DNA from: Selaginella moellendorffii
Lineage: Eukaryota > Plantae > Lycopodiophyta
Assembly (NCBI RefSeq): GCF_000143415.4
Contig: NW_003314269.1
Location: 2,969,060-3,033,059 of the forward strand
Direction: 5' to 3'
Length of the DNA stretch: 64,000 nucleotides
Position 1 is the first letter of the stretch. Each line of letters begins with the position of its first letter. Position numbers and translations under genes: made by a program. This document shows, piece after piece, positions 3,587 through 53,683 of this stretch. The notes under the pieces were generated by a model. The model was not told where the DNA came from and did no database searches. It worked only from the letters and a program-made list of their open reading frames with translations.

Positions 3587-3781
3587 ATTCCAACCGTCGG
3601 ATCCGAATCTCCGCATGATGCCCAAAAGGAAGATTCCATCCGTTTCTTTTATTTCCACGTTTAGGGTTTGTCAAGGGCGGAGGCGCGGGGGCGCAAGGAG
3701 AAAGGAGGTGAGTCTCCACAATCCCAGCAGGAGCGGCAGATCGATCGGTACGATCGATCAAAAGTTTCAAAGGAAATCAAG

Positions 3782-4384
3782 ATGATGAGCAGCAGCAGCA
3801 GCAGCAGCGCCAGCGCACAGGAGAGGAAATTCGGCGCCGAGAAGGAAATCCGGCTCTACAATCCCTACGATTTCTACGGCACCAGTGGCGGCGCCAGCAG
3901 CGGCGCCGCTGATCTCTACCGGCTGCCCAGCGCGCCCGAGTTCCTCTTCACGGAGGAGGCGGCGTTCCAGCGGCGGTCCCTGGGCGAGAATATCCAGTAC
4001 TACACGGGGGTGGGATACCTTGGCGGCGCTGTGCTGGGCGGAGCCAAGGGGATCTTTGATGGAATAAGGTCGAGGGAGGTGGACGATACCACCAAGCTGA
4101 GGCTCAACCGGGTTTTAAACGCGTCCGGGCACACGGGGAGGAGCATTGGGAACAAGGTTGGCGTGCTGGGGCTCTTGTACGCGGGCGTGGAGAGTGGGAC
4201 GTGGTACTTGCGAGGCGCGGATGATATACTCAACCCGGTGCTGGCGGGGCTGGCGACTGGGGCGCTCTACAAGGCGGCGGCGGGGCCGAGGACGGCAGCC
4301 ATAGCTGGGGCGCTCGGGGGGATTGCGGCGGGGAGTGTTGTGGCAGGGAAGCACATTGTAAGGAGATACTTGCCCAGCCTTTGA
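3782..4384 (+). CDS. TIM23: Mitochondrial inner membrane translocase Tim23, intronless
   Basis: RLYNPY...LYRLPSAPEFLF...RRSLGENIQYYTGVGYLGG...KLRLNRVLNASG...GNKVGVLGLLYAGVESG; Tim17/22/23 family. Confidence 0.95.
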   Translation: MMSSSSSSSASAQERKFGAEKEIRLYNPYDFYGTSGGASSGAADLYRLPSAPEFLFTEEAAFQRRSLGENIQYYTGVGYLGGAVLGGAKGIFDGIRSREVDDTTKLRLNRVLNASGHTGRSIGNKVGVLGLLYAGVESGTWYLRGADDILNPVLAGLATGALYKAAAGPRTAAIAGALGGIAAGSVVAGKHIVRRYLPSL

Positions 4385-6317: not shown

Positions 6318-9124
6318 TCACTTGTCCATGATCATGCTACTGTTTGCCAGCCCCTGCAATCGCTCGTGAGCCTCGAAGCACTGCTTGGAGAAGGCCCTGG
6401 CCGCGTAGAAGATGCTCGGCAGCCCAAGCTCCAGGCTGCTAATCGTCTTGGCCTTGGATCTCTCCCCGAGCTCCTCGGCCTTCTCCCTCTCCTCGTCCCG
6501 CCTCCTCTTGAGCACCTCCAGCTGCGCTCTCTTCTCCGTCATGGCGACGCTCCGCGCGTTGCTCCCCCCGCGGACCACCTCCACCGGCACCTCCCCGTTC
6601 TCGTCCGTGCTCACAGTCCGGCTCACCGCCGCGCTCCTGGCGTGCTTCCTCTCATACTTCTCCACGTAAATCTCCCGCGCCTTCACCTCCTTCTCCAGCG
6701 CCTCCACCTTCTTCCTGTGCCGCGACTCCTCCTTTTGCATGTCCACGATCAGCTGGAGGTCCGCCACGAACGTGTTGATGGCCTCGAGCGCGCTCCTGTC
6801 CGGGAGCCTGTCCAGCGCCATTTGCCACTCGTGGCACAGCGTGGAGATGGGCTTGGGTGACGCGGCGTGGAAGATCCCCTTGTCCAGCTCCACTGACTTG
6901 ACGCTCACCTTGACGTAAACGTTGAGCTGTTGCATGAAGACTTTGTGGCTGCTCACCACCGAGCCGAAGTACTGGTGCCAGCGGCTGAGCGCCACCTTGA
7001 GCTGCTCGGTCGCCACCTTGTGGAGGCTGTTGGTCGACTCCACCACGTCCGAGCAGTCGAGCTTCTTCATCTCCGCCACTGCCTTGTACTGTTCTTCGTG
7101 GCATTCGTGAGTTTTCTTCCACATCTCGTACAGCCTGTTTTGGTTCTTTCGAAGGTTAGCTTAGCTCTACGAAACTTTATAGCTAGTTTGCGTACCCTTT
7201 GAGGAGCTCCAGAAGTTGTGGATACAGTTCCGAGTCCCGGAGCCTGAGCACGGCGTTGCGAGCCGTGTCCACGCCTTGCATTGCAACGACATGACGGGTG
7301 TGCAGCAATTTCTCCGCTGCTTTTGCCTTTTCGATCGCTTCGGCATTTCCTCCTCTAGATTCCTCCTTTTGTATCCAAGTGTTCTTCTTCTCGAGCTCTA
7401 CGCGCAGGCCTTCAGCTCTCTAAAGGAGACGAAAGAAAAGAGTTAAAGAGACGCGCTTTCATAATTCGAAAAGGGAGAACTAGACCTTGACTTCGTCGTA
7501 CAGCTTCTTCTCCCATGCAAGCAATCGATCTAAAGTGGAGGCGTGGGTTCCAGTCGCGTCACCACTTTCATCATCGAATACCGACTGCTCTGCTGCCGCT
7601 CTGGCCAAAGAGGAATTGCTGCTGCTCCAAGAAATAGCTCTCAGAACCTTCTTTGCATGAGTTTCATCGGCTACAAACACAAAACCGGTGTTATTAGAAA
7701 AGCAGAACCAAAACGAACCAAAAAAAAAGAAAGAGAAGAACTTACATCTGCCATCAATGAAATTTGGATGGAAGGAAACACGCTGCGCCTCGAGCATCGA
7801 AGCCACATGCCTTCCACTTTCGTAAGCCACCTCGAAAGGTTCCACAATGCGCTTGAGCACAGCAACTAGCTCACCGTTGCCTCCTCGTTTTGAAGAAGTC
7901 ACAATGCTCAAGTCGGACTTTGGCAGGTCATAGCTCACAGTTTTTTTCGCTGGTTCTTCCTCAGGCTCAGCCTCCTCGTTTTCTTCCTCCTCTTCACCAT
8001 CTTCCTCTTCTTCCTCCTCTTCGTCCAATTCGTCCTCGTCCTGTTCTTCTTCCTCCTCGTCTTCATCCTCGTCCCCTTCATCCACAGTTGAGGGCCGTCT
8101 GTGCATTTGTTCTTGCTGCTTTTGCTTCAGTTCCATCTCCTGCTGCTGTTGCAGCTTCAATTTTCTTTCCTCTTCTTCCTTTCGCTGGTCACAAAAAGAA
8201 CAAAAAAGCGGACATTAGTTAGCTTTGCCATGCATGCTTCGCACTAATTACCTGAGCTTCTTTTTCTTCCTCCTCTTGAAGCTTCCTACGCTTCTCCTCT
8301 TCGAGTTGCTGCTGCTTACGTCGATCTTCGTCATCGAATTCTTCTTCGTTGTCGTCTGATCTTGGCAACGGCACGGCTGAGTGGGAAAACTCAAACAGAT
8401 CAGACATCATCCAGGACGAGCTCGGAGGTGGCGGTGGTGGCGGAGGTGCCTTGCTCGAAGGAACTGGAGGAGGTGGCGGAGGTGGAACCCAGTCATCTTC
8501 ATCTTCACTCGACACTTTAACATTGTTCTCCACACTTGAAGACTCCTTCACGTCTTTCTGCGGCTCCGTCAACTCCTCTTCCATCACGGAACTTGCTTGT
8601 TGCTCACGAAGTTCCGGCTCAGGCGATGGTGATGGAGATGGAGAAACCTCCTTTTTCTTAATCGTGCTGCTGCTGCTGCTTCGAGCAGCCTTCACCGGTG
8701 GAGTTGACGAGTTGTCGGCGTTCTTTGGCACCGCTGCTGAGGTTTTCTTCCTCTCGAAGTTCATCGGTGGCAAGCTGACAGTTCTCTTCATCGAATTCAG
8801 CACCATGGGTGACGGTGAATTCTTCTGCTGAGACGTTGCCGAAGGCCGGTACAGCGGAGGAAGTGGAGGAGGTTTTGCAGGCTTCATAGGCGTTGCGGTT
8901 GTCATAGGAGTGGACGAAGCAAACGTTGGCGAGGCCGTGTCCTGGAACTCAGCCTCCTTGAACTGGCTGAAGGCGGAGCCGATTGTCTTGAGAGCAATTA
9001 CGTAGTTCGAAAAAGCCGCTGCAAAATTGTGACGAGCGCTCACAGCTTCTTTCACGTGCCTTTTACGACTGCTACAAAGTGCCACGACCTCTTCGTTCTC
9101 GATCTTTGATGTAGCACACCCCAT
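6318..9124 (-). CDS. DUF630/DUF632 protein (APSR1/NRG2/REL2 family), multi-exon
   Basis: MGCATSKIENEEVVALCSSRKRHVKEAVSARHNFAAA (DUF630), poly-Pro and poly-Glu linker, HASTLDRLLAWEKKLYDEVK and MWKKTHECHEEQ (DUF632). Confidence 0.92.
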
Positions 9125-9893
9125 GGTCGACAAAGCTTCCTGTTTTCTCGCACAAAATTCCTATCTTCTATAGTACCTGAGCCTTCCTTGCCTCTTGGGG
9201 TCTCCCAAATTCATCTTTCCCTACTACTCCGTTTAACTTATCTGCTGAATCTGATGCACAGCGCGACGAATTCACCAAAATCTAGCCAAGGGAGTTGAGA
9301 AACCTGCTTACCCAAGTAGGGATCCATTTATTGGTGCTTTCGCGTCTCCACCTAGTCGGTGATGCAGGGAAAGGAGCTTCTTTGCCATACGGAAGCGACT
9401 GGGAAACCGAAGGAGCTGTGTTGTTGTTTCTTGCTGTAGCACAAAGCCAAGGACCCACTAGCATCCTCTTTCTCCTGCCACGCTTTTTCTTGGTGTTTTT
9501 TTCATTGTTGGTTGTACCACCGTGACGATGCTCTTGCACGCAGCGACGCATCTTGCTGCATCACGGATCCATATCCGAACCTGCGAGTAAAAAACTCCAA
9601 GGAAAAAAACAGAATGCGAGTGAGTGAGGTTTAAAAGAGGGAGCTTCTCCTAGCTAAAAAGGAGGAGTAAATGCTGCAGAAGATGCCAGACATCGCAAAA
9701 TAGAGATGTAGATATTGACAGCCAAATTGAATGGATCCTATGTCAAACCAGGAAAAGCAAAATGGAATCAAAACAAGGAGGAAAAATGATAAAAACGAAG
9801 GAAACTTACGCTTTGCCGCTTGCGTGGAGTGATTACTTTAATCATCCAGTTGGAGCCGTTCTTGTTGCGTAGGTATATAATATCTCACTGGCT

Positions 9894-11057
9894 ATGGCGC
9901 TCTTGTTGTCCTCTCTGCCTTTACTCCTATCGGCAACAGCTCCTCGTTCCATACGATCCTTCTCTGCCAGGAGGAGAGGTCCCAGAATTCTCCTGTGTAG
10001 AGCCCAGAGTTCGTCGTCCAAGACCGATGCTGCTCAGGTCTATAATGGTGTCTACGGCCCCTGGTCGATTGATTCGACCGACGTGCGCGAGGTAATGCCT
10101 GAATCTTCGTCGACCATCGTCCTTTTTCTTGAGAATTGGTGTCACTTACTTCCATCACCACCGACTTTTACGCGTTGTGGACTGTGACATGATTTCCTTG
10201 TGTCTCCAGGTCTTCTTGTACAGAGCTGGTCTAGTAACATCGGCAGCTACATTTGTCGCGGTAGCGTCTACGGCGTTCCTGCCGGAAGACAATGTTGTCA
10301 AGTCTGTGATTTCAACTTATCAAGACTTACTTTTTTCGATTGGAGCCGGGTCACTCGGGGTGTCCCTGCTGCTCATACACATCTACGTCACTCCACTGAA
10401 GCGAGCGTTGCAAGTCCTATGGACAGTCGGAGTGGCTGGTTCTATACTTGTAGCATCCAACTTCGCCACTCCAGCTGACAGGGGTCTGGTGGAATTCGTT
10501 GTGGAGAATCCCGCTGCGGTTTGGGCAGTCGGGCCTCTCTTTGCAGCACTCACAGGCCTGGTTTTCAAAGAAGGTAACACTGAGCTCTCCTTTCAGAAAG
10601 AAAAAAAAAATGGAACTCACCACCACTTATGGCTCGTTCGTCAGGATTGTGCTATGGAAAACTAGAGGCGGCACTCCTCTTCTTCGTGATACCATCCTTG
10701 CTCTTGGGTCACCTGGTACGCATCCCATTTTCATGCCTGCACAAAGTTCTTATAAGAAAAACTCATTGCGGCATATCAGTCGGGAGCGATGGATGACAAC
10801 GTAAAGCAAGGTCTACTGGCGGCCTGGATGGGTCTCTTTGCGGTTTTCGCTGGCAGGAAATTCACACAACCAATAAAGGTAGACCTTCTCTGCTTCCTTT
10901 CAAATCTTCTAAAGGAAAAAACCACTGCCAGGATGACATTGGGGACAAATCTATCTTCATGTTTAATGCCCTACCAAAAAGCGAGCAGGAGGCAGTGCTG
11001 CGGTCACGGGCAATGCAAGAAATGCAGGAAAACAACACGGACAGAAGCAATCCATAG
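9894..11057 (+). CDS. DUF2301 plastid integral membrane protein, multi-exon
   Basis: Transit-like N-terminus; VYNGVYGPWSIDSTDVRE|VFLYRAGL, LIHIYVTPLKRALQ, GPLFAALTGLVFKEG|LCYGKLEA, RKFTQPIK|DDIGDKSIF. Confidence 0.9.
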
Positions 11058-11482
11058 GGATCGAGCAAAGACTTCGTAATAAAAGCCATCTACGGCAAGA
11101 AATGTGAGCCAGATCATTGGAGAAAGCGCCATGGATCTAAGGCGCAGCCTCAAGCAGCTGACTCGACGGTGAATCTACGCACTGATAAAAACTCACAGCG
11201 TACCTCGGCGCGGCCGCAAAGCGAGCACGACGACGCTGCAGTAGAACTTGGGTGCGCATAAACCCTAACCCTCGTTCCTCCTCGAGCTTTTACATCCGGG
11301 GATCCAACGGTGGGCAACACTGTCAACGGTGTAGAATCGCCGGAACTCCCGCCCAAAGAAACTTTCGATCAAAGAGGAATGATTAATATATATGGTTGTA
11401 GAGTTCTATTCCAACTTTGCGAGCCTAGCTACATACATCCATATTATAAATCATATCCACGGTCTATCCTCGCTAAAAAAGT

Positions 11483-12191
11483 ATGAGTCCTCGTTTGATC
11501 TTCCTCCTCTCGCTGCTGGTAGCGGCGGCTATGGTGGCCACCGCCCAGCAGTGTGATCGCAATCGCCCTTGTGGAGACAACATGTGTTGCAGCCAATGGG
11601 GCTACTGTGGATGCTCCGCGGATTACTGCGGCAATGGGTGCCAAAGCCAGTGTAACTGGTGTAGCGGCGGCGGCGGAGGCGGTGGTGGTGGTGGTGGCGG
11701 CGGAGGAGGAAATGGCGAGGCAACGTTCTACACGGAATACGTTCGTGAGTTCCTCGATTCAAAGCGTTCAATCAATTCTTCCTCTCGACCAACTGATTGA
11801 TTGCCCCTTGTGTGTGATCACAGCATCGGCTTGCTATGGCTTCGATCGCGGGCCCTTTCCAGCCGGAAATTTGATCGCGGCAGCCAGCCCCGATATCTTC
11901 AATGGCCTCTGCGGCGCCTACTTCGATATCACTTGCAAGGGCGCGGTCTCTGGCGCTGGAGGATGCCGGTCGAACGACGCTACAGTCACCGTCCGGGTCG
12001 TGGATCTCTGCCCGGGCTGTCACGCTAATTCCTTCGATCTCTCTTACGAAGCCTTCACCCGCATCGCGAATCCGGATGTTGGGCGAATCCGGATCTTCTC
12101 CCAGAGGAAGAATGGGGCGGGAATTGGCCAGGAATTCATCGCCCAAGTGGTCGGATCGACAAACTCCACCCAAGAGCCCAGTAAACGCTGA
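11483..12191 (+). CDS. Secreted hevein (chitin-binding, CBM18) + poly-Gly linker + EG45-like/plant-natriuretic-peptide-like DPBB protein; intron 11745-11823
   Basis: Signal peptide; [23 protein letters not shown] hevein signature; G-rich hinge; [10 protein letters not shown]|PSACYG...IAAAS...CG...C...[12 protein letters not shown]...[21 protein letters not shown]. Confidence 0.88.
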
Positions 12192-16798: not shown

Positions 16799-19156
16799 AT
16801 GGTGGGAACCGACCTCCACTCGCTCGCCCACGAGATCAGGGCGTGTGGGAGCTCCAAGGATCTGGGAGAGGCCCGGCGGATCCACGCGGTCGTGCGCGGC
16901 AGCGCGCATTGCCACAGCGCCCATCTCGCCACTCTGCTGCTGGAGATGTATGGCAAATGCGGCAGCCCGCGGGATGCCAAGCGCGTCTTTGATTCCATCC
17001 CCGACCCCAGCGCAATCCTTGTCCGAAAGCTCGTTTCGGTGTATGGATTGAACGGGAATCTGGAAGAGGCCAAGACGATCTTTGATTCGATCAAGGATCC
17101 CAGCACTGTCTGCTGGAACACGCTCCTCTCAGCAAATGCTCAGCAAGGGCATCTGGAAGATGCCAAACGCATTTTTGACACTATACCTCTCAAGGACACT
17201 ATTTCTTACAACATCATGGTAGCCGCGTATGGAAGCCACAGGCAACCCGACAAGGCGAAACGGATATTCGAGGAGATACCCAACCCGGATGTAGTCTCCT
17301 GGAACAGCATTATTCGCGCACTTGCCGGGAACGGGCGTCTAGCAGATGCCAAAGCCATGTTTGAGAATATGCCGAGGCCCGACGTGGTGTCTTGGACAGC
17401 CGTGATTCAAGCCTACGCGGAGAACGGGCGGCTGAAAGAAGCCAAGGAATACTTTGACAAGATGCCCGACAGAAACGTTGTTTCCTGGACGACTATGCTC
17501 GCAGCTTTTGCCAAGAGTGGGAATTTCTCGGAGGCGAAGGAGATGTTTGATCGAATGCCCGAGAGGCATGTAATCTCCTGGAACGCGATGGTTTCGGCTT
17601 ACGTCCAGGTCGCGAAGATTCATGAAGCGAAAGAAATGTTTGATGCGATGCCGGAGAAGACCGAGGCGAGCTGGAATTGTTTGCTCGCTGGTTATGTTCA
17701 GTATGGTCATGTGGATCAGGCAAAGAGCTTGTTTGATAGAATGCCGAGGAAAACTCTCGTGTCTTGGAACTCGATGATCTCCGGCTTTGCTCAGAGCAGC
17801 GAGGTGGAGGAAGCTAGAAAACTATTCGAGCGAATGCCGCGGCGTGACGTACCAAGCTGGAACACGATGATCACGGCCTACTCGATGAATGGGAACTTGC
17901 GTGAGGCAAGGAGATTATTCGAGGAGATGCCCCTCAAGGATGCAGTGTCGTGGACTGCAATGATCCACGGGTATGCCGAAGGTGCTCTCGTCGAGAAAGC
18001 TCGAGAGCTCTTCCAAGCCATGCCTCGCAAGACGGTGGTGGCTTGGACGCTGATGATCACGGCCTACGCGAGGGTGGGCGATATGGATCGAGCCCAAAAA
18101 ATGTTTGATGCTGCGCCTTACAGGGACTTGATATCGTGGAACGCTTTCATGTCCGGCTATGCGAGCATTGGAGAGGTGGAAAACGCGCGAAAGATCTTTG
18201 AGAGAATGCCCGAGTGGGACCTTGGATCCTGGGTTCACATGATGAAAGCTTACGCGCAGCACGGGCAGATCAGAGAGGTTGCCAGAGTTTTCCGCGAGAT
18301 GCCCGAGCAGAACACGCTCTCGCGAAACGTGATGATCCTCGCCTTCGTTGAAAACGGAGAGCTGGAACAAGCAAAGTTTACTTTTGATTCCATGCCGCAG
18401 CCGGACATGGTTTCCAGGAACATTATGATGCTCGGCTACGTCCAAGACGGTCGTCTTGAAGAGGCAGAGAAAATCTTCCAGAGCTCTCCAGAGATTGACA
18501 AGTTCTCGTGGAACACTATGATCTATGGATATGCGGATCAAGGGTTCTTGAGTGACGCAAAAGAAGCGTTTTACACTCTTTGCTTCGATCGAGATGTTCT
18601 TGCCTGGACTTCGATGATCAAGGCTTACGCTTTCAAAGACTGCTTCAAGGAGGCCAAAGCTATCTTCGATCGAATGCCTGAGCTGGACGTAGCAGCATGG
18701 AATGCAATGATCGGGTCATACTCCAAGAAAACCCACGAAAGCTCTCTCGAGCTCTTTCAAGAGATGGCTATGGAGGGGTTCTCCTACGACGAGATAAGTT
18801 TCACTGCAGTCTTTAGCACATCTAGTCACGTTGGCTGCTTGGAGAAGAGCCACCAGTGCTTCACGTCTATGAGCTTCGACCATGGATTGATCCCATCGAG
18901 AGACCATTACGCTGGAATGGTGGATAATCTCAGTCGTGCAGGACAGCTTGGGAGAGCTCAGGATCTGATGAACAACATGCCGTTTGTCCCTGATGCAGCG
19001 ATTTGTTCGACATTGCTCGGTGCTTGTGAAGTTCATGGCGACGTAGAGCGAGGGAGCGACACCGCTCTCCGGAGCTTCCAACTGGAGCCATCCGCGACAG
19101 CCCCATATGTGTTGCTGTCCAACATTTTGGAGAGGAAACGTCAGGAGGTGCTTTGA
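16799..19156 (+). CDS. PLS-class PPR protein dominated by 31-aa S/SS-type repeats, with partial E domain and no DYW
   Basis: Intronless 785 aa; repeated VVSWxxMIxAYAxxGxLxEAKxxFDxMP units; ends TLLGACEVHGDVERG...PYVLLSNIL with no PG box or DYW. Confidence 0.92.
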   Translation: MVGTDLHSLAHEIRACGSSKDLGEARRIHAVVRGSAHCHSAHLATLLLEMYGKCGSPRDAKRVFDSIPDPSAILVRKLVSVYGLNGNLEEAKTIFDSIKDPSTVCWNTLLSANAQQGHLEDAKRIFDTIPLKDTISYNIMVAAYGSHRQPDKAKRIFEEIPNPDVVSWNSIIRALAGNGRLADAKAMFENMPRPDVVSWTAVIQAYAENGRLKEAKEYFDKMPDRNVVSWTTMLAAFAKSGNFSEAKEMFDRMPERHVISWNAMVSAYVQVAKIHEAKEMFDAMPEKTEASWNCLLAGYVQYGHVDQAKSLFDRMPRKTLVSWNSMISGFAQSSEVEEARKLFERMPRRDVPSWNTMITAYSMNGNLREARRLFEEMPLKDAVSWTAMIHGYAEGALVEKARELFQAMPRKTVVAWTLMITAYARVGDMDRAQKMFDAAPYRDLISWNAFMSGYASIGEVENARKIFERMPEWDLGSWVHMMKAYAQHGQIREVARVFREMPEQNTLSRNVMILAFVENGELEQAKFTFDSMPQPDMVSRNIMMLGYVQDGRLEEAEKIFQSSPEIDKFSWNTMIYGYADQGFLSDAKEAFYTLCFDRDVLAWTSMIKAYAFKDCFKEAKAIFDRMPELDVAAWNAMIGSYSKKTHESSLELFQEMAMEGFSYDEISFTAVFSTSSHVGCLEKSHQCFTSMSFDHGLIPSRDHYAGMVDNLSRAGQLGRAQDLMNNMPFVPDAAICSTLLGACEVHGDVERGSDTALRSFQLEPSATAPYVLLSNILERKRQEVL

Positions 19157-28007: not shown

Positions 28008-31000
28008 ATGGGGCGATGGCGCTGGCGCGAGCGCCTCCGGCGGGCGGCGTTGAGGCCGCTCCGGCGCTGGATTGTTGGCGCGGATGACTGCGCGATCGAT
28101 ATTTCGTGGAGCTTGTCCGGTGTGGAGCTCCGTCTCGGTAAGTTTGAGCTGATTCCGGAAGCTGTCAATGCCGAGGCGCTGCTATCCTCGCCTCTCGTCC
28201 TGCGCCGGGCCTCAATTGCGTCTGCGAGGCTTGCATTCTCACTCATCGGGTCGCCGGCAATCGCCATTGTCATCGAGGGCCTCGATGCCGAATGCTCTGC
28301 ACGGTTAGTGCTATAGGTTTTTTTTTATAGAGAAATCATTGAAGTTACAGAGATGCTGAGGATTCATATTGGAAAAATACAATTGCGGATCGTGGCGCTC
28401 ACCAGCGATTGGAAAGGCTCGCGTCAATTGATCCAGAGGTATTTTTTCACCTTTCAATTCTATCGAAAGTGACTATTTTCTGCTTGGCAAACACAGGGTG
28501 CTAGCGAGCACTCGAGAGCAAAACTAAAGGAGGAAAACCGCACTGGTTTCTTCCTACTTTTGCTGATATCGTTCTTGCTCTCAGCTGTGAAAGTCGAGCT
28601 ACACGATGCGAAAATCTCTCTCAGGTCTCGTCAAGGCTACGAAACCTGTATTTCGTCTACGCAGCTGGTTGTCGGAGAAGAAATGCCGAGCGGGTTTTTC
28701 AAGGGAAGCATGTTTGGGTCATTGAGCAACATGGTGGTATACAGTCGGAAAAAGGCTACAAAAGCTTGCAGCGCGTCACGGGTAAGCGTTACTTTCAGAG
28801 ACAGCCGCCGGCAAGAGCAAGTCAGGGGTGACGAGGGAAATGCCGTGTTGATGGTGATGGTTTGGCTTTCGTTTGGTGTTTGGGAGGATTCTTTCTGTGG
28901 ACTCACAGTGAGTATCCCAGAGGCAGTAGGGGGACTGGACTCTAGCGAGCTGGATTTAGTTTTGCTGCTGCTGGCTGAGTTGGAAGGGCCGTCAGGGAGG
29001 CTTACGTCCGCGTCGAGCAGCGGTGGAATATCGTCTCCCGGTTGTAGAAACGCGAAAGAGCTTTGGGCATGGGCAGTGTCAAAGGTTTTACGCGAGTCTC
29101 CAAGACGAAGACTAAGTGCTAGCTTTGAAGCTGGTATCCTCCGTCGGCGTTACTGTTCTCTTTATGGTGATTGGCTTCAAAATGTTGGCTGGTGCAGTAA
29201 GTCTCAACGTCTGGATCGGGCAGAACATTTTAAGAAGTTATCATCATCCGTCGCTGAGCTTGAGAAGAAGCTACCAGTTGAAGCAGTGGCTCTTGCTCGT
29301 CGGATTGCACGGAGACGAGTTTTTCTGAAGGAATCCAATGCAGTGAAGCAAGACGATGTTTCGCAGGGTTTTTTGAAAAGAAAATGGGCCGGGTTTCTAA
29401 GGGCAGTAGGATATGACAGAGATGCAGTTGAGAAAAAATGGGAAGAGCAACAGACAAGTGACAGAAAAAGCCAGGATTTTTCGTTGGACTTTAGCCGTGG
29501 TTCTCTGGTATTCGTAGGTGCTGGAGACGTATCGGTTTGCCTCAGATGGAAGAAAATGTCCGTGGTCTACCGTTCAAACAAGGATCGGAGAGAAACAGTA
29601 GTTGTTCTAGGTAGCTTACGCGGAGAAATACTGAGCAAAAGCATCGAAGGCAGAGGGAAGTTTTCATACGAAACAAGTACGGAATGTAGGCTACGTTGGA
29701 ATGACAGAGCATCGAGTGGGTTTCTTTTCTTTTCAAGTTCGCCCTTCGAACATCAGCAAGCAGCTAGAACGCTACAGAAATACAATGTCGGTCTTCAAGA
29801 GAAGCACGCCTCCAGAAATTATGAGGAAACTCGGAACTGGCAAACGAAGTTGTGGAAACACTACAGCGATGACAAGAAGATACAGAGATCTTTGGATAGC
29901 TTGGTGGGGCCTTTCCTGGTGGTCTTCTATGGAACTGCGCCGGAAAACAATCGACTGCCAGACACAAGTATGATCGTTACTGTAGGAAAAGTGGACATGA
30001 GCTTCAGGTATGCCATGTTTTCCAAGCTTCTTCCGATCTTGACGGAACTCAGAAAACTCGAGCACTCTGGACAACCGTCATCTAAAGACATACACAAGGC
30101 TAGCACCTCTGCACATAGTGTTTATAGGGAACAGATGGAGTTGTGCCGAAGCTTGGTTTTTTCAGCTGTTCCCGAGACTCGAATGCAACTCACAGCCGTT
30201 GTTGAGAACGTTCGACTGACGTTGGAAGTATCGGAAAGTGAGCTGCCAATCCAAAATGTGAAATTGAAGCCGTTGGTTTTAGACGTCGGCTATTTCGAGT
30301 TCGCACTTTGGCCTGCGGTCGAGCATAACCAGTGGATAAGGCCTCTTCGCTTACAAGAACAGCCGCCTACGCGAAAAGACGACTTGGACCGTGACAGTTT
30401 TGCAAGCAACCTACTTGTGTACATAAATGGCAGTAGATTCAGCACGCAGTCGGAAAATTTTGTTGGGCCTTTGAACGTAACGGTGGAGTCTTCATTTCAA
30501 AGGTATGCTGGTTTTTCCTTTCCTCTCTGTTATTCCATCCTGCTAAGACTGTCTTCTATCCAGGGAAAACTGCACGTCGCTCTTCGAATCTCTCAAGTCC
30601 GTGGCATTGACGGCTGGCTTGGCAGCACCGTCTTTTGACGTCTGCTTGGACATCAGCAAAGCGACAACTGCTGTCCAGGTACCTATTTTAAGCCTGTTTC
30701 TCATCTAAGTGAAAGAAAGCTGTATTTTTTCTGCAGATCCTTATTTGTTACTTCGAGGCTGCTAAGAATGCTGCTTCGCACCTGTACGATTCGACTACCG
30801 AGAGTGAAAGTGACAATGATGCAATTTCTACAGATGAAACCTTTTCGCTCGATCTTAGCTTCAACCTTCAAAGCTTCAAGGTTTATTTTGGCGACTTGGA
30901 AGCTAGTCGACAATCGGGGGATACAGAAACGAGCCTGGGAATTGGAATTTTGGCCGTAAACAGCTTATGCCTTGATTTTACAGCCGGTAGCTGGTCTTCT

Positions 31001-41865: not shown

Positions 41866-42948
41866 TCAAAAGTCCCAAAGGCTGTCCTCCGGTAATTCGT
41901 GCCTGACCATTACCTCGTCAGCCTCGTCCGGAAGAGTAGCGAAAAGATTGAGATTGCTACTGTCAGTCACGCTCCAAGTCGTGTCGATGCTGCTGTTGTC
42001 CACCAGCGGTGACGTTCCTGCCAGTGTCGCTTGCAGTTCGTGTGCTCCGATCATTGCATACAGTGAAGCCGATGACTGCCGCTCGTACTTCCTGCGTCTG
42101 ATCTGTATCATCGCATCGTCGTCCGCGTCCTTGCTCACCAAGCTTCCAGTTTCCTGCTGAGCCACCGAGAAAAATCCTTGGAAGCAGGCTGCTGCTGCTA
42201 CCACGTCCGGCGGGAGCGGACTCGGGATGAGCTCCTCCTCCTGAGGAGCGATGCTCATGGAGCTGATGCAATTCTCGAGCATCGACGACGACGACGACTT
42301 TGTGCAGTCGACGACGAGCTCAGGTACTTTCGTCATTGACAGTGAAGTCAGTGGAGGATTTCCTGAACTGACCGTAAACTCCTGGTTGCTGTTGTAGATG
42401 GAAATCGCCTCCAGCATTGCCGGAGTGTGATCGTCGAGCTCCTCCTCTTGGCACGGAGAGAAAGGCGTGCCGGAGGACGCAAAGTTGGTCCTGGAGTCCG
42501 CTCCGCGCAGCAAGCTGGCGGCCTCGTCGTAGGCGCGAGCGGCATCTTCTGCATTATCGTAAGTTCCAAGCCACAGTCGGACTTTCTGAGCGGTGTCTTT
42601 GATTTCAGCAACCCACCTACCGGAAGATCTTTGCCTCACTCCCACGAACTTCTTCCGCCGCTTGGAACTCTGGAAGCTGTCGTCGTTGGTTGCCTCCTCG
42701 TCGGGGCTGGAGACTTGGTAGAGGTGGTGGTCCTGCAGCGGCGGCGGCTGCTGCTGGAGAACTTGGCACTCAAACAGGCGCTTTGATCGACGCTGCTGCC
42801 GCGTTTTCCTCCCGATGTCCAAACGGTAGAAGGGGAAGCTGTCGTCCTCGCTCGACTGCGACTGCGATTGTGGCTGCGGTGGGAAATTCGCGATCTCGGG
42901 TGATGATGATAAGTTGCTGCTCGCCTTGCTGTACTGGTGCGGATCCAT
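41866..42948 (-). CDS. AP2/ERF transcription factor, ERN1/RAP2.11-like, intronless
   Basis: [58 protein letters not shown]; C-terminal [15 protein letters not shown]; start codon uncertain. Confidence 0.9.
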
Positions 42949-43572
42949 GCTAAACTTGTCGATCAGTCTGTGCAGGACGCGAACGTCATACAACGTTGAG
43001 ACGACGCTCACTTTGCGAGAAGGCATCCAGGGAGAGAATCGATCACTCCAGGTACACACGCTAAGTTCTTGCTTGGACAAGCAAGAAAAATCCCTCTTTT
43101 TTTCCTCTCCTGTGAATTCTAAGCTCTCTTGCGTGATTGTGAGCGTGCAGCTGATGATGGACGGAGTGATTGCCTAGTTATAAGCCGCTTCGAAGGATCA
43201 GCCTGCATCATCCACCTGGCGAGTGGCGAGCGATCTCCTGCGAGAAGCGCGTTTCTCTTTTCTCAAAGGTACGTAGTAGACGCATTTGTCACTTATCGCG
43301 TTGGAGTCTTGTAAATGGCAGCTAGGAAATGCAGAAAAATGGCGCTCCTTCTCCGAAGCTCGCGGAATAAATTCTCTCAATATTTTACTTCCCAGGGAGC
43401 GTGACAACTGCAGCCCAAGAACGCGGCAGAATTTTCTTTTGGCTTGTCGCGCCGGTCAAAAAGAGTCAACGGGTATATCCACGAAGATGCGGCCCCGTCA
43501 CTGACGGCCGGCGGGAACCTTCACTGGCCGTCAGCCGTTGACGTTTTTGTTCTGTCGGCGATCGCACTGATC

Positions 43573-50971: not shown

Positions 50972-53683
50972 ATGGCTCGGTGCTGCCAGGGCCTTAGCGC
51001 AGCAGCGCCAGCGCCCGCGGCCGATTTGCCCTCCAGTAGCAGCGGCGCGACCAGGCCCGCGCATCTCGTCCGCCTCCTTCGCGCCGCCGGTGATGATCGA
51101 TTGCTCTCGCAGGGCCGGAGGATCCACGCGCGCATTGTCAGCCTCGGCCTCGAGGAGGAGCTGGGCAACCATCTCCTGCGTCTCTATCTCAAATGCGAGA
51201 GCCTGGGCGACGTCGAGGAGGTCTTTTCTAGATTGGAGGTCAGGGACGAGGCGTCGTGGACGACGATCATCACCGCCTACACAGAGCACGGCCAGGCCAA
51301 GCGCGCGATCTGGATGTTCCACCGGATGCAGCAGGAAGGCGTGCGATGCGACGCCGTCACGTTCCTCGCGGTGCTCAAGGCGTGTGCCAGGCTCGGGGAT
51401 CTCTCGCAGGGGCGAAGCATCCACGCCTGGATCGTGGAAAGCGGTCTAGAGGGCAAATCGGTGCTCGCCAATCTCCTCCTCCACATCTATGGTTCTTGCG
51501 GCTGCGTTGCGAGCGCGATGCTTCTCTTCGAGAGAATGGAGAGAGATTTAGTCTCGTGGAACGCGGCAATCGCAGCAAATGCCCAGAGCGGGGATTTGGA
51601 CATGGCGCTGGAGCTCTTCCAGAGAATGCAGCTCGAGGGCGTGAGGCCCGCGAGGATCACTCTCGTCATCACCCTCAGCGTCTGTGCGAAGATTCGGCAA
51701 GCCCGGGCGATCCATTCCATTGTCCGGGAGAGTGGATTGGAACAAACGTTGGTGGTGAGCACGGCTCTCGCGAGCGCGTATGCCCGGCTCGGGCATCTGG
51801 ATCAAGCAAAGGAGGTCTTCGATCGAGCCGCCGAGAGGGACGTGGTGTCGTGGAACGCGATGCTGGGGGCGTATGCCCAGCACGGGCATATGTCCGAAGC
51901 AGCGCTTCTCTTCGCGAGGATGCTCCACGAGGGGATCCCGCCGAGCAAAGTCACGCTCGTCAATGCCAGCACCGGCTGCTCGAGCTTGCGATTTGGAAGG
52001 ATGATCCACGCCTGCGCGCTGGAAAAGGGGCTGGATCGAGATATCGTCCTCGGGAATGCGCTGCTGGACATGTACACGCGGTGTGGATCGCCGGAGGAAG
52101 CTCGCCATCTCTTCGAGGGGATCCCTGGCAACGCGGTGTCCTGGAACACGATGATCGCTGGAAGCTCGCAAAAGGGTCAGATGAAACGAGCGCTCGAGCT
52201 GTTCCAGAGGATGCAGCTCGAGGGAATGGCGCCGGTGCGAGCGACGTACCTCAACTTGCTCGAGGCGGTGGCCAGCAATCCGGAAGAAGCTCGAGCGATG
52301 GCCGAAGGGAGGAAGCTCCACTCCCGGATCGTCTCCTGCGGCTACGCCTCGGAGCCTGCGATTGGAACCGCGGTGGTGAAGATGTATGCGAGCTGTGGAG
52401 CGATCGACGAGGCGGCAGCGTCATTCCAGCGAGGAGCGATGGAGGATCGTCACGACGTTGTGTCCTGGAACGCGATCATCTCGAGCTTGTCCCAGCACGG
52501 CCACGGCAAGCGCGCGCTCGGCTTCTTCCGGAGGATGGATCTCCACGGCGTGGCTCCAAACCAGATCACCTGCGTCGCGGTGCTGGATGCCTGCGCTGGC
52601 GCTGCCGCACTGACGGAAGGAGTGATCGTCCACGACCACCTCCGCCACTCGGGCATGGAGTCCAACGTCTTCGTCGCCACTGCGCTGGCCAGCATGTATG
52701 GACGCTGCGGGAGCCTCGAGTCCGCCAGGGAGATCTTCGAAAAGGTGGCGGTGGAGCGGGATGTGGTGATCTTCAACGCGATGATCGCTGCGTACTCCCA
52801 GAACGGGCTCGCCGGAGAAGCGCTCAAGCTCTTCTGGAGGATGCAGCAGGAAGGATCCCGGCCGGACGAGCAGAGCTTCGTGAGCGTGCTGTCAGCTTGC
52901 AGCCACGGAGGTCTCGCGGACGAAGGCTGGGAGATCTTCCGGTCGATGAGGCAGAGCTATGGCATCGCCCCCAGCGAAGATCACTACGCCTGTGCCGTGG
53001 ACGTGCTGGGACGGGCTGGCTGGCTCGCGGACGCCGAGGAGTTGATACGATGCATGGACGTGAAGCCCACTGTCCTGGTGTGGAAGACGCTGCTCGGAGC
53101 TTGCCGGAAGTACCGCGATGTCGATCGAGGCCGGCTTGCAAACTCGATGGTCCGAGAGCTGGATCCTGGTGACGAGAGTGCCTACGTCGTCCTGTCCAAC
53201 ATCCTTGCCGGAGCTGGAAAATGGGACGAGGCCGCGGAAGTTAGAACCGAGATGGAGTCGAGAGGACTGAGGAAGCAGGCCGGGAAGAGCTGGATCGAGA
53301 TCAAGAGCCGGGTCCACGAGTTCGTCGCAGGTGATCGGTCTCATCCCAGGAGCGAGGAGATTTACCGGGAGCTCGAGCGGCTTCACGCGGAGATTCGAGA
53401 GATCGGCTACGTCCCGGACACGAGGCTTGTTCTGAGAAAGGTGGACGAGGCCGAGAAGGAGCGGCTGCTGTGCCAGCACAGCGAGAGGCTCGCCATCGCT
53501 CTGGGAGTGATGAGCTCTTCCACTGACACGGTGAGAGTGATGAAAAACCTTCGAGTCTGCGAGGACTGTCACAACGCAACCAAGTTTATATCCAAAATCG
53601 TGAACAAAGAGATCGTGGTGAGAGACACACACCGGTTTCACCACTTCGTAGATGGATCTTGCTCGTGCGGAGATTACTGGTAA
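50972..53683 (+). CDS. PLS-E-DYW PPR protein (organellar C-to-U editing factor), intronless
   Basis: P-L-S triplets, E domain, AGKSWIE box, HSERLA and CEDC zinc ligands, terminal CSCGDYW. Confidence 0.96.
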   Translation: MARCCQGLSAAAPAPAADLPSSSSGATRPAHLVRLLRAAGDDRLLSQGRRIHARIVSLGLEEELGNHLLRLYLKCESLGDVEEVFSRLEVRDEASWTTIITAYTEHGQAKRAIWMFHRMQQEGVRCDAVTFLAVLKACARLGDLSQGRSIHAWIVESGLEGKSVLANLLLHIYGSCGCVASAMLLFERMERDLVSWNAAIAANAQSGDLDMALELFQRMQLEGVRPARITLVITLSVCAKIRQARAIHSIVRESGLEQTLVVSTALASAYARLGHLDQAKEVFDRAAERDVVSWNAMLGAYAQHGHMSEAALLFARMLHEGIPPSKVTLVNASTGCSSLRFGRMIHACALEKGLDRDIVLGNALLDMYTRCGSPEEARHLFEGIPGNAVSWNTMIAGSSQKGQMKRALELFQRMQLEGMAPVRATYLNLLEAVASNPEEARAMAEGRKLHSRIVSCGYASEPAIGTAVVKMYASCGAIDEAAASFQRGAMEDRHDVVSWNAIISSLSQHGHGKRALGFFRRMDLHGVAPNQITCVAVLDACAGAAALTEGVIVHDHLRHSGMESNVFVATALASMYGRCGSLESAREIFEKVAVERDVVIFNAMIAAYSQNGLAGEALKLFWRMQQEGSRPDEQSFVSVLSACSHGGLADEGWEIFRSMRQSYGIAPSEDHYACAVDVLGRAGWLADAEELIRCMDVKPTVLVWKTLLGACRKYRDVDRGRLANSMVRELDPGDESAYVVLSNILAGAGKWDEAAEVRTEMESRGLRKQAGKSWIEIKSRVHEFVAGDRSHPRSEEIYRELERLHAEIREIGYVPDTRLVLRKVDEAEKERLLCQHSERLAIALGVMSSSTDTVRVMKNLRVCEDCHNATKFISKIVNKEIVVRDTHRFHHFVDGSCSCGDYW

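Follow-up and report, generated by a model that had tools for sequence, protein, structure and literature searches.

A hevein/EG45-like protein of Selaginella moellendorffii and its relatives in mosses and liverworts

The window, a 64-kb stretch of Selaginella moellendorffii DNA, contains a two-exon gene on the plus strand (11483-12191) encoding a signal peptide, a hevein domain, a poly-Gly hinge, an EG45-like DPBB domain and a C-terminal tail (Table 1). Judged from sequence comparison, this fusion belongs to an old family of non-seed plants, present in mosses, liverworts and Selaginella, and is not a one-off assembly. Its product is read here as a secreted, chitin-targeted hevein/EG45-like defence protein, the non-seed-plant counterpart of class I PR-4, and we regard this overall reading as moderately probable. 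The gene and its domain pair are already annotated in UniProt and appear in two papers; the sole departure from the records is a longer Gly hinge.

Table 1. Coordinates of the hevein/EG45-like gene, of its parts and of other ORFs in the window.
Feature	Position	Strand	Remarks
Exon 1	11483..11744	+	start codon, signal peptide, hevein, Gly hinge, first DPBB strand; closes on base 1 of a split Pro codon
Intron	11745..11823	+	79 nt, GT..AG, phase 1; within the DPBB domain, past ..TEYV
Exon 2	11824..12191	+	rest of the DPBB domain, C-terminal tail, stop codon
Signal peptide, aa 1-21	11483..11545	+	hydrophobic core in the translation; predicted cleavage after ATA (ATA/QQ)
Hevein/CBM18 domain, aa 22-60	11546..11662	+	Pfam PF00187; 10 Cys
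Poly-Gly hinge, 15 Gly	11666..11710	+	GGN microsatellite
DPBB domain, N-terminal part	11711..11744	+	T and Y of the strand invariant in the alignment; pLDDT >90 from about residue 70 of P0035
DPBB domain, main part	11824..12110	+	Pfam PF03330; six Cys
C-terminal tail, 26 aa	12111..12188	+	motif EFIAQVV, NST sequon; predicted disordered, pLDDT 52-64
Tim17 ORF	3668-4384	+	
DUF632/DUF630 ORF	6318-9133	-	
DUF2301 ORF	10129-10665	+	
Terpene synthase ORF, 349 aa	13034-14083	+	intronless; Terpene_syn_C_2 (PF19086), 3e-31; ~840 bp downstream of the hevein gene
PPR gene	16799-19156	+	long, intronless
692-aa ORF	28560-30638	+	no Pfam match at E ≤ 0.001
AP2 ORF	41866-43080	-	
PPR gene	50972-53683	+	long, intronless; E, E+ and DYW deaminase motifs

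The reading frame of the gene is intact and both splice sites are canonical, with the donor GTGAGT at 11745 and a CAG acceptor. The codon split between the exons (C/CA) encodes the proline of Y.PSACYG, a residue that the original prediction had inferred. Whole codons are translated from 11483 to 11743 in exon 1 and from 11826 to 12188 in exon 2, where the translation opens with SACYG. The locus is SELMODRAFT_437354 (Smo437354), for which a protein of 200 aa is on record (EFJ38438.1, XP_024524378.1, D8QQD3), together with one of 184 aa in the same cluster (NP_001411805.1). The translation of exon 2 is 100% identical to the 'EG45-like domain containing protein [Selaginella moellendorffii]' (P0001) and to P0035 (XP_024524378/D8QQD3). 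Since both exon translations correspond exactly to P0035, hinge length excepted, this database protein was used for all steps requiring the full-length sequence; the two exons were searched separately. A pseudogene or an annotation artefact is ruled out by the intact frame, the canonical splice sites and the identity to RefSeq proteins, an NP_ record among them. By translation and Pfam, every domain feature that had been described for the locus, from the signal peptide through hevein, hinge and EG45-like domain to the C-terminal extension, was found in place, and this agreement is far beyond chance.

The hinge comprises 15 Gly in the window as against 6 in the RefSeq/UniProt protein, which is a difference of 27 nt. 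The copy in the window looks like an allele of SELMODRAFT_437354 with a longer Gly hinge, i.e., an allelic length polymorphism in the linker.

Exon 1 matched Chitin_bind_1 (PF00187) at 4.1e-10, with 40.2 bits against a cutoff of 27.8. All eight canonical hevein cysteines are present in order. Two additional cysteines, C44 (YCGCS) and C60 (NWC), result in the spacing C-x5-C-x4-CC-x5-C-x-C-x4-C-x3-C-x3-C-x2-C, which is common to the relatives in Sphagnum. The original prediction had noticed these extra cysteines (YCGCS, QCNWC), and they are real: the equivalents of C44 and C60 co-occur in every hevein-bearing relative of the clade termed A below and are absent from all 8-Cys relatives. A disulfide between C44 and C60 is proposed because both co-occur perfectly, and it would probably be the fifth of the domain. 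The 10-Cys hevein-like antimicrobial peptides (wheat WAMPs, Eucommia EAFP and Euonymus Ee-CBP) also have a hevein scaffold with a fifth Cys pair. In WAMPs, the last extra Cys is found three residues past the final canonical Cys, as in the Selaginella hevein. However, its partner in Selaginella lies two residues past the fifth canonical Cys (..YCGC..), a position unlike that in the 10-Cys peptides, and the first loop is three residues shorter than theirs.

According to the translation, the predicted chitin-contact positions are filled by S37, W39, Y41 and Y48, which we take to correspond to S19, W21, W23 and Y30 of hevein. The hevein part of the structure model described below matched pokeweed lectin and the CBM18 of Hevea in Foldseek. 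In a study of 2023, in which S. moellendorffii was mined in silico for hevein lectins, Smo437354 (20.9 kDa) was classed as Sec/SPI (Table 1 of that study) and described as a hevein domain fused to a 'lytic transglycosylase domain (PF03330)', and the modelling templates were expansins (PMC10378081).

Exon 2 matched DPBB_1 (PF03330) at 1.2e-13, with 51.5 bits against a cutoff of 28.8, and neither exon gave a Pfam match to Barwin (PF00967) at E ≤ 1. Among named relatives, EG45-like proteins of angiosperms come nearest (41-52% identity, E-values from 1e-19 to 1e-8), and the closest solved structures by sequence are bacterial and fungal expansins. For comparison of the fold, P0035 was modelled with AlphaFold from an alignment of 72 sequences (mean pLDDT 83, barrel >90); an earlier model from 8 sequences was set aside (pLDDT 49). 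The top 12 Foldseek matches of the model are expansins, whose domain 1 was hit with E-values of 8e-8 to 7e-6. Next are loosenin (8e-6), kiwellin (1e-5), the Streptomyces papain inhibitor SPI (2.4e-5) and GH45 (about 1e-4), followed by barwin-like proteins (about 2e-3, ranks 33 and 35) and cerato-platanin (about 5e-3). Pfam, relatives and Foldseek agree with the proposal that the C-terminal domain is EG45-like and expansin-related and neither a barwin nor a chitinase domain. The clustering with barwin which would have spoken against it was not found, as there is no Barwin match and barwin folds rank far behind expansins.

The closest solved folds to the DPBB domain, i.e., microbial expansins and fungal loosenins and cerato-platanins, are non-hydrolytic polysaccharide-binding barrels, some of which bind chitin. 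Unlike the Selaginella protein, expansins have a second domain, CBM63, in place of an N-terminal CBM18, and the identity is merely 22-31%. D139 (VVDLCPGC) and D150 (SFDLS) in the numbering of P0035 are near-invariant, and the six cysteines are conserved; the two aspartates presumably correspond to D71 and D82 of EXLX1. In the comparison with GH45, which was made by alignment only, the acid-equivalent Asp of SFDLS is conserved, and the candidate base position after TFYT is occupied by Glu in Selaginella and by Val in Sphagnum.

From these features, a mode of action can be proposed. The hevein module, with its intact Ser and aromatic positions, would anchor the protein on fungal walls by docking on chitin or on oligomers of GlcNAc. 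The DPBB barrel, in which both aspartates of the expansin groove are retained, would act without hydrolysis; it could bind or loosen polysaccharide, or its ligand could be a microbial protein. Non-hydrolytic action is suggested because the candidate position of the GH45 base is not conserved. Chitin binding, antifungal activity and loosening activity are thereby attributed to the protein by analogy with its domain families only. The architecture can be seen as a natural experiment in aiming a non-hydrolytic expansin-like barrel at chitin in plants.

Some DPBB proteins target proteins instead of polysaccharides. Kiwellin inhibits Cmu1 of Ustilago, and papain is the target of SPI, a DPBB protein from Streptomyces. 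Both are significant structural neighbours of the model, and the Selaginella barrel might accordingly be an effector or protease decoy, which binds and inhibits a secreted microbial protein while the hevein domain positions it at the hyphal surface. This is very improbable, since expansin domain 1 is nearer by sequence as well as by fold and since the sequence searches gave no match to kiwellins, which have an N-terminal kissper peptide, the similarity being confined to the fold level.

The angiosperm EG45-like proteins and plant natriuretic peptides (AtPNP-A) share motifs and the six Cys with the DPBB domain of Selaginella, and a misannotated EG45-like protein (P0031) suggests an intron at the shared position. 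Unlike the Selaginella protein, they stand alone, with neither hevein domain nor C-terminal tail. A non-defence role of the Selaginella protein is possible because the angiosperm EG45-like proteins include signalling molecules (PNP-A). The EG45-like domain could be a secreted, hormone-like ligand in the manner of PNPs or have its target in the wall of the plant itself; the hevein domain would then only localise it or sense GlcNAc signals of symbionts. The 41-52% identity to the family including PNP-A favours such a signalling or endogenous role. However, we know of no PNP signalling in lycophytes, the target suggested by the hevein domain is chitin, a polymer absent from plants, and hevein fusions elsewhere in plants are defence proteins (PR-3, PR-4). 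We therefore consider this role improbable and retain the chitin-targeted defence protein as the favoured reading.

Relatives of the fusion were collected with a word search and a full HMMER scan using a profile of the fusions, and both domains were confirmed by Pfam in each protein checked. Bryophyte hevein/EG45-like (hevein/RlpA-like DPBB) chimerolectins which carry this Pfam pair in the same collinear order were found in Sphagnum fallax (KAH8960066), Ceratodon (KAG0600925), Marchantia (MARPO_0535s0001) and Physcomitrium ('WIN1/WIN2'). In the tree of the DPBB domains, plant fusions fall into two clades. Clade A (support 99/92) contains the Selaginella fusion, the fusions of Sphagnum fallax and S. 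magellanicum, a form with two heveins and two further proteins. An unfused Selaginella paralogue, XP_002962308 (P0002), is nested within this clade as sister to the Selaginella fusion (99/96). All fused members of clade A have the 10-Cys spacing with the shortened first loop, and the full-length Sphagnum relatives resemble the Selaginella protein in 10-Cys pattern, tail and intron position. A genomic contig of Sphagnum (L004:2661-3786) has three exons, and its intron 1 is located at the same codon as in Selaginella with identical flanking codons (TACGTTC/GT); unlike Selaginella, it carries an additional intron ahead of the tail. The Sphagnum relatives are probably transcribed, because three environmental contigs (L001-L003) are without the introns which are present in L004.

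Clade B (100/98) contains fusions with canonical 8-Cys heveins from Ceratodon, and a search with one of its members yielded further fusions in Physcomitrium, Marchantia polymorpha, M. paleacea and Riccia. The proteins of these genera differ from that of Selaginella by the 8-Cys hevein, a longer first loop and other DPBB loop motifs. Unfused proteins are nested in clade B as well, including one Marchantia protein and P0117. Two proteins of Physcomitrium patens, P0227 and P0238, were automatically named 'wound-induced protein WIN1/WIN2' by NCBI, yet they contain DPBB_1 and not Barwin; the names are misleading and were probably transferred via the hevein domain. Whether clades A and B are sisters is left open by the tree, and their union is not rejected by an AU test (p = 0.119). 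The same Pfam pair, with one to four heveins and DPBB_1, also occurs outside plants, namely in Physarum polycephalum (P0111), in the rotifer Adineta ricciae (P0192) and in P0143 and P0190. The DPBB domains of Physarum and the rotifer, the only two of this non-plant set in the tree, cluster as an outgroup (100/99). This suggests that their hevein and DPBB_1 pair was assembled independently, and in eukaryotes the combination evidently has more than one origin.

The hevein/DPBB architecture had been counted before in a survey of 2019 (Suppl. Table 3), with seven cases in Marchantia polymorpha, three in Physcomitrella patens, two in Sphagnum fallax plus one with two heveins, one in Selaginella moellendorffii, and none each in Azolla, Salvinia, Picea, Ginkgo and four angiosperms (PMC6362431). 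In the same table, hevein/Barwin is listed only for Picea, Arabidopsis and Glycine (PMC6362431). The absence of hevein/DPBB from ferns and seed plants is read from this table and from the homologue searches performed here, which together are not an exhaustive survey. The original prediction had presented the Selaginella protein as a new, independently assembled one. This view is not supported, given the collinear architecture and shared intron position in Sphagnum, the related form in mosses and liverworts and both earlier papers (PMC6362431, PMC10378081). An architecture already widespread and characterised had been named as a counter-argument at the outset; it is indeed widespread and catalogued, whereas the literature search yielded no paper joining 'hevein' with 'EG45' and no experimental characterisation of the gene.

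A more specific history is proposed tentatively, and we give it rather less than an even chance. The fusion may have arisen once at the base of the land plants as an ancestral chitin-targeted DPBB defence protein, may have been lost in ferns and seed plants and may have been replaced functionally by hevein-barwin proteins (class I PR-4). Selaginella and Sphagnum would then keep an undescribed 10-Cys subclass with a C44-C60 disulfide and a conserved sorting tail.

The C-terminal extension described in the original prediction exists and is conserved in clade A. In most members of this clade, including the unfused paralogue P0002, an acidic stretch is followed by the tail motif I/V-x-Q-V-V, and in clade B the unfused P0117 bears a similar tail (..ETFIAQV..). 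In the Sphagnum contig L004, the tail is encoded by a third exon of its own, which would mark it as a discrete module there. The role of the tail may be that of a sorting signal or of a propeptide. It resembles vacuolar determinants which are located at the C-terminus of other proteins, for example barley lectin. However, the hydrophobic motif of the Selaginella tail is not at the extreme C-terminus, since 12 polar residues follow, and the reading as a vacuolar signal is weakened by this. Vacuolar sorting via the tail is, hence, plausible but weak.

Tail and hinge also bear on the question of whether the protein acts in one piece. It might be a precursor, and cleavage within or close to the Gly hinge would release a free 10-Cys hevein-like antimicrobial peptide and the EG45-like domain, while the tail would be lost as a propeptide; prohevein and the precursors of the wheat WAMPs would be comparable cases. 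The layout of signal peptide, hevein, Gly-rich hinge and DPBB is that of prohevein and class I PR-4, the length of the hinge is variable and unconstrained (6 vs 15 Gly), and the tail is predicted to be disordered and has its own exon in Sphagnum. Furthermore, the existence of the unfused paralogue implies that the DPBB domain can work alone. However, the fusion has stayed intact across the split between mosses and lycophytes, which suggests selection on the linked form, and we consider processing of this kind rather unlikely compared with the action of the linked, chitin-targeted protein.

For this favoured reading, the class I PR-4 proteins (prohevein, potato WIN1/WIN2 and tobacco CBP20) are the obvious comparison. 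They have the same order of signal peptide, hevein, Gly/Ser hinge and a domain with DPBB fold, and a weak local similarity to the Selaginella protein is found in the core ..CG..V.IVD.C...DL..F. However, their C-terminal domain is Barwin and not DPBB_1/EG45-like. A clade-B fusion (P0066) aligns end to end with a PR-4 of Vitis, but nearly all of the score comes from the hevein domain. The similarity between DPBB and barwin domains is confined to the barrel core, with pairwise E-values of 2e-5 for clade B and 0.006 for Selaginella. A Barwin HMM built from six PR-4 barwin domains scored fused and unfused EG45-like proteins alike (10-22 bits); a descent of barwin from the fused clades is unsupported, as the HMM shows no preference for fused over unfused proteins. 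Hevein/EG45-like and hevein/barwin proteins are best regarded as analogues whose taxonomic ranges complement each other, and the Selaginella protein would be, by analogy, a functional counterpart in non-seed plants of the hevein-barwin PR-4 defence proteins. The range of the architecture in bryophytes and one lycophyte complements that of the hevein-barwin PR-4 in seed plants and bears on the evolution of PR-4-type defence. The pathogen-induced 'MpPR4' genes of Marchantia, which have been labelled chitin-binding or barwin-like, are a lead only and are not tied to hevein/DPBB_1 sequences.

The genes flanking the hevein/EG45-like gene are housekeeping or regulatory ones and do not form a defence cluster, which counts against the defence reading, and no tandem paralogue was found within the 64-kb window. 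The intronless ORF some 840 bp downstream belongs to the terpene synthase-like genes of microbial type, a family known to occur in Selaginella as well as in other plants without seeds. The motifs of the second PPR gene are typical of RNA-editing factors, a family which is expanded in Selaginella. Upstream of the hevein/EG45-like gene, a TATAAAT motif is located at 11445-11451, just 32 nt 5' of the start codon, a distance that would leave room for only a very short 5' leader, and a second AT-rich motif is found near 11383-11392.
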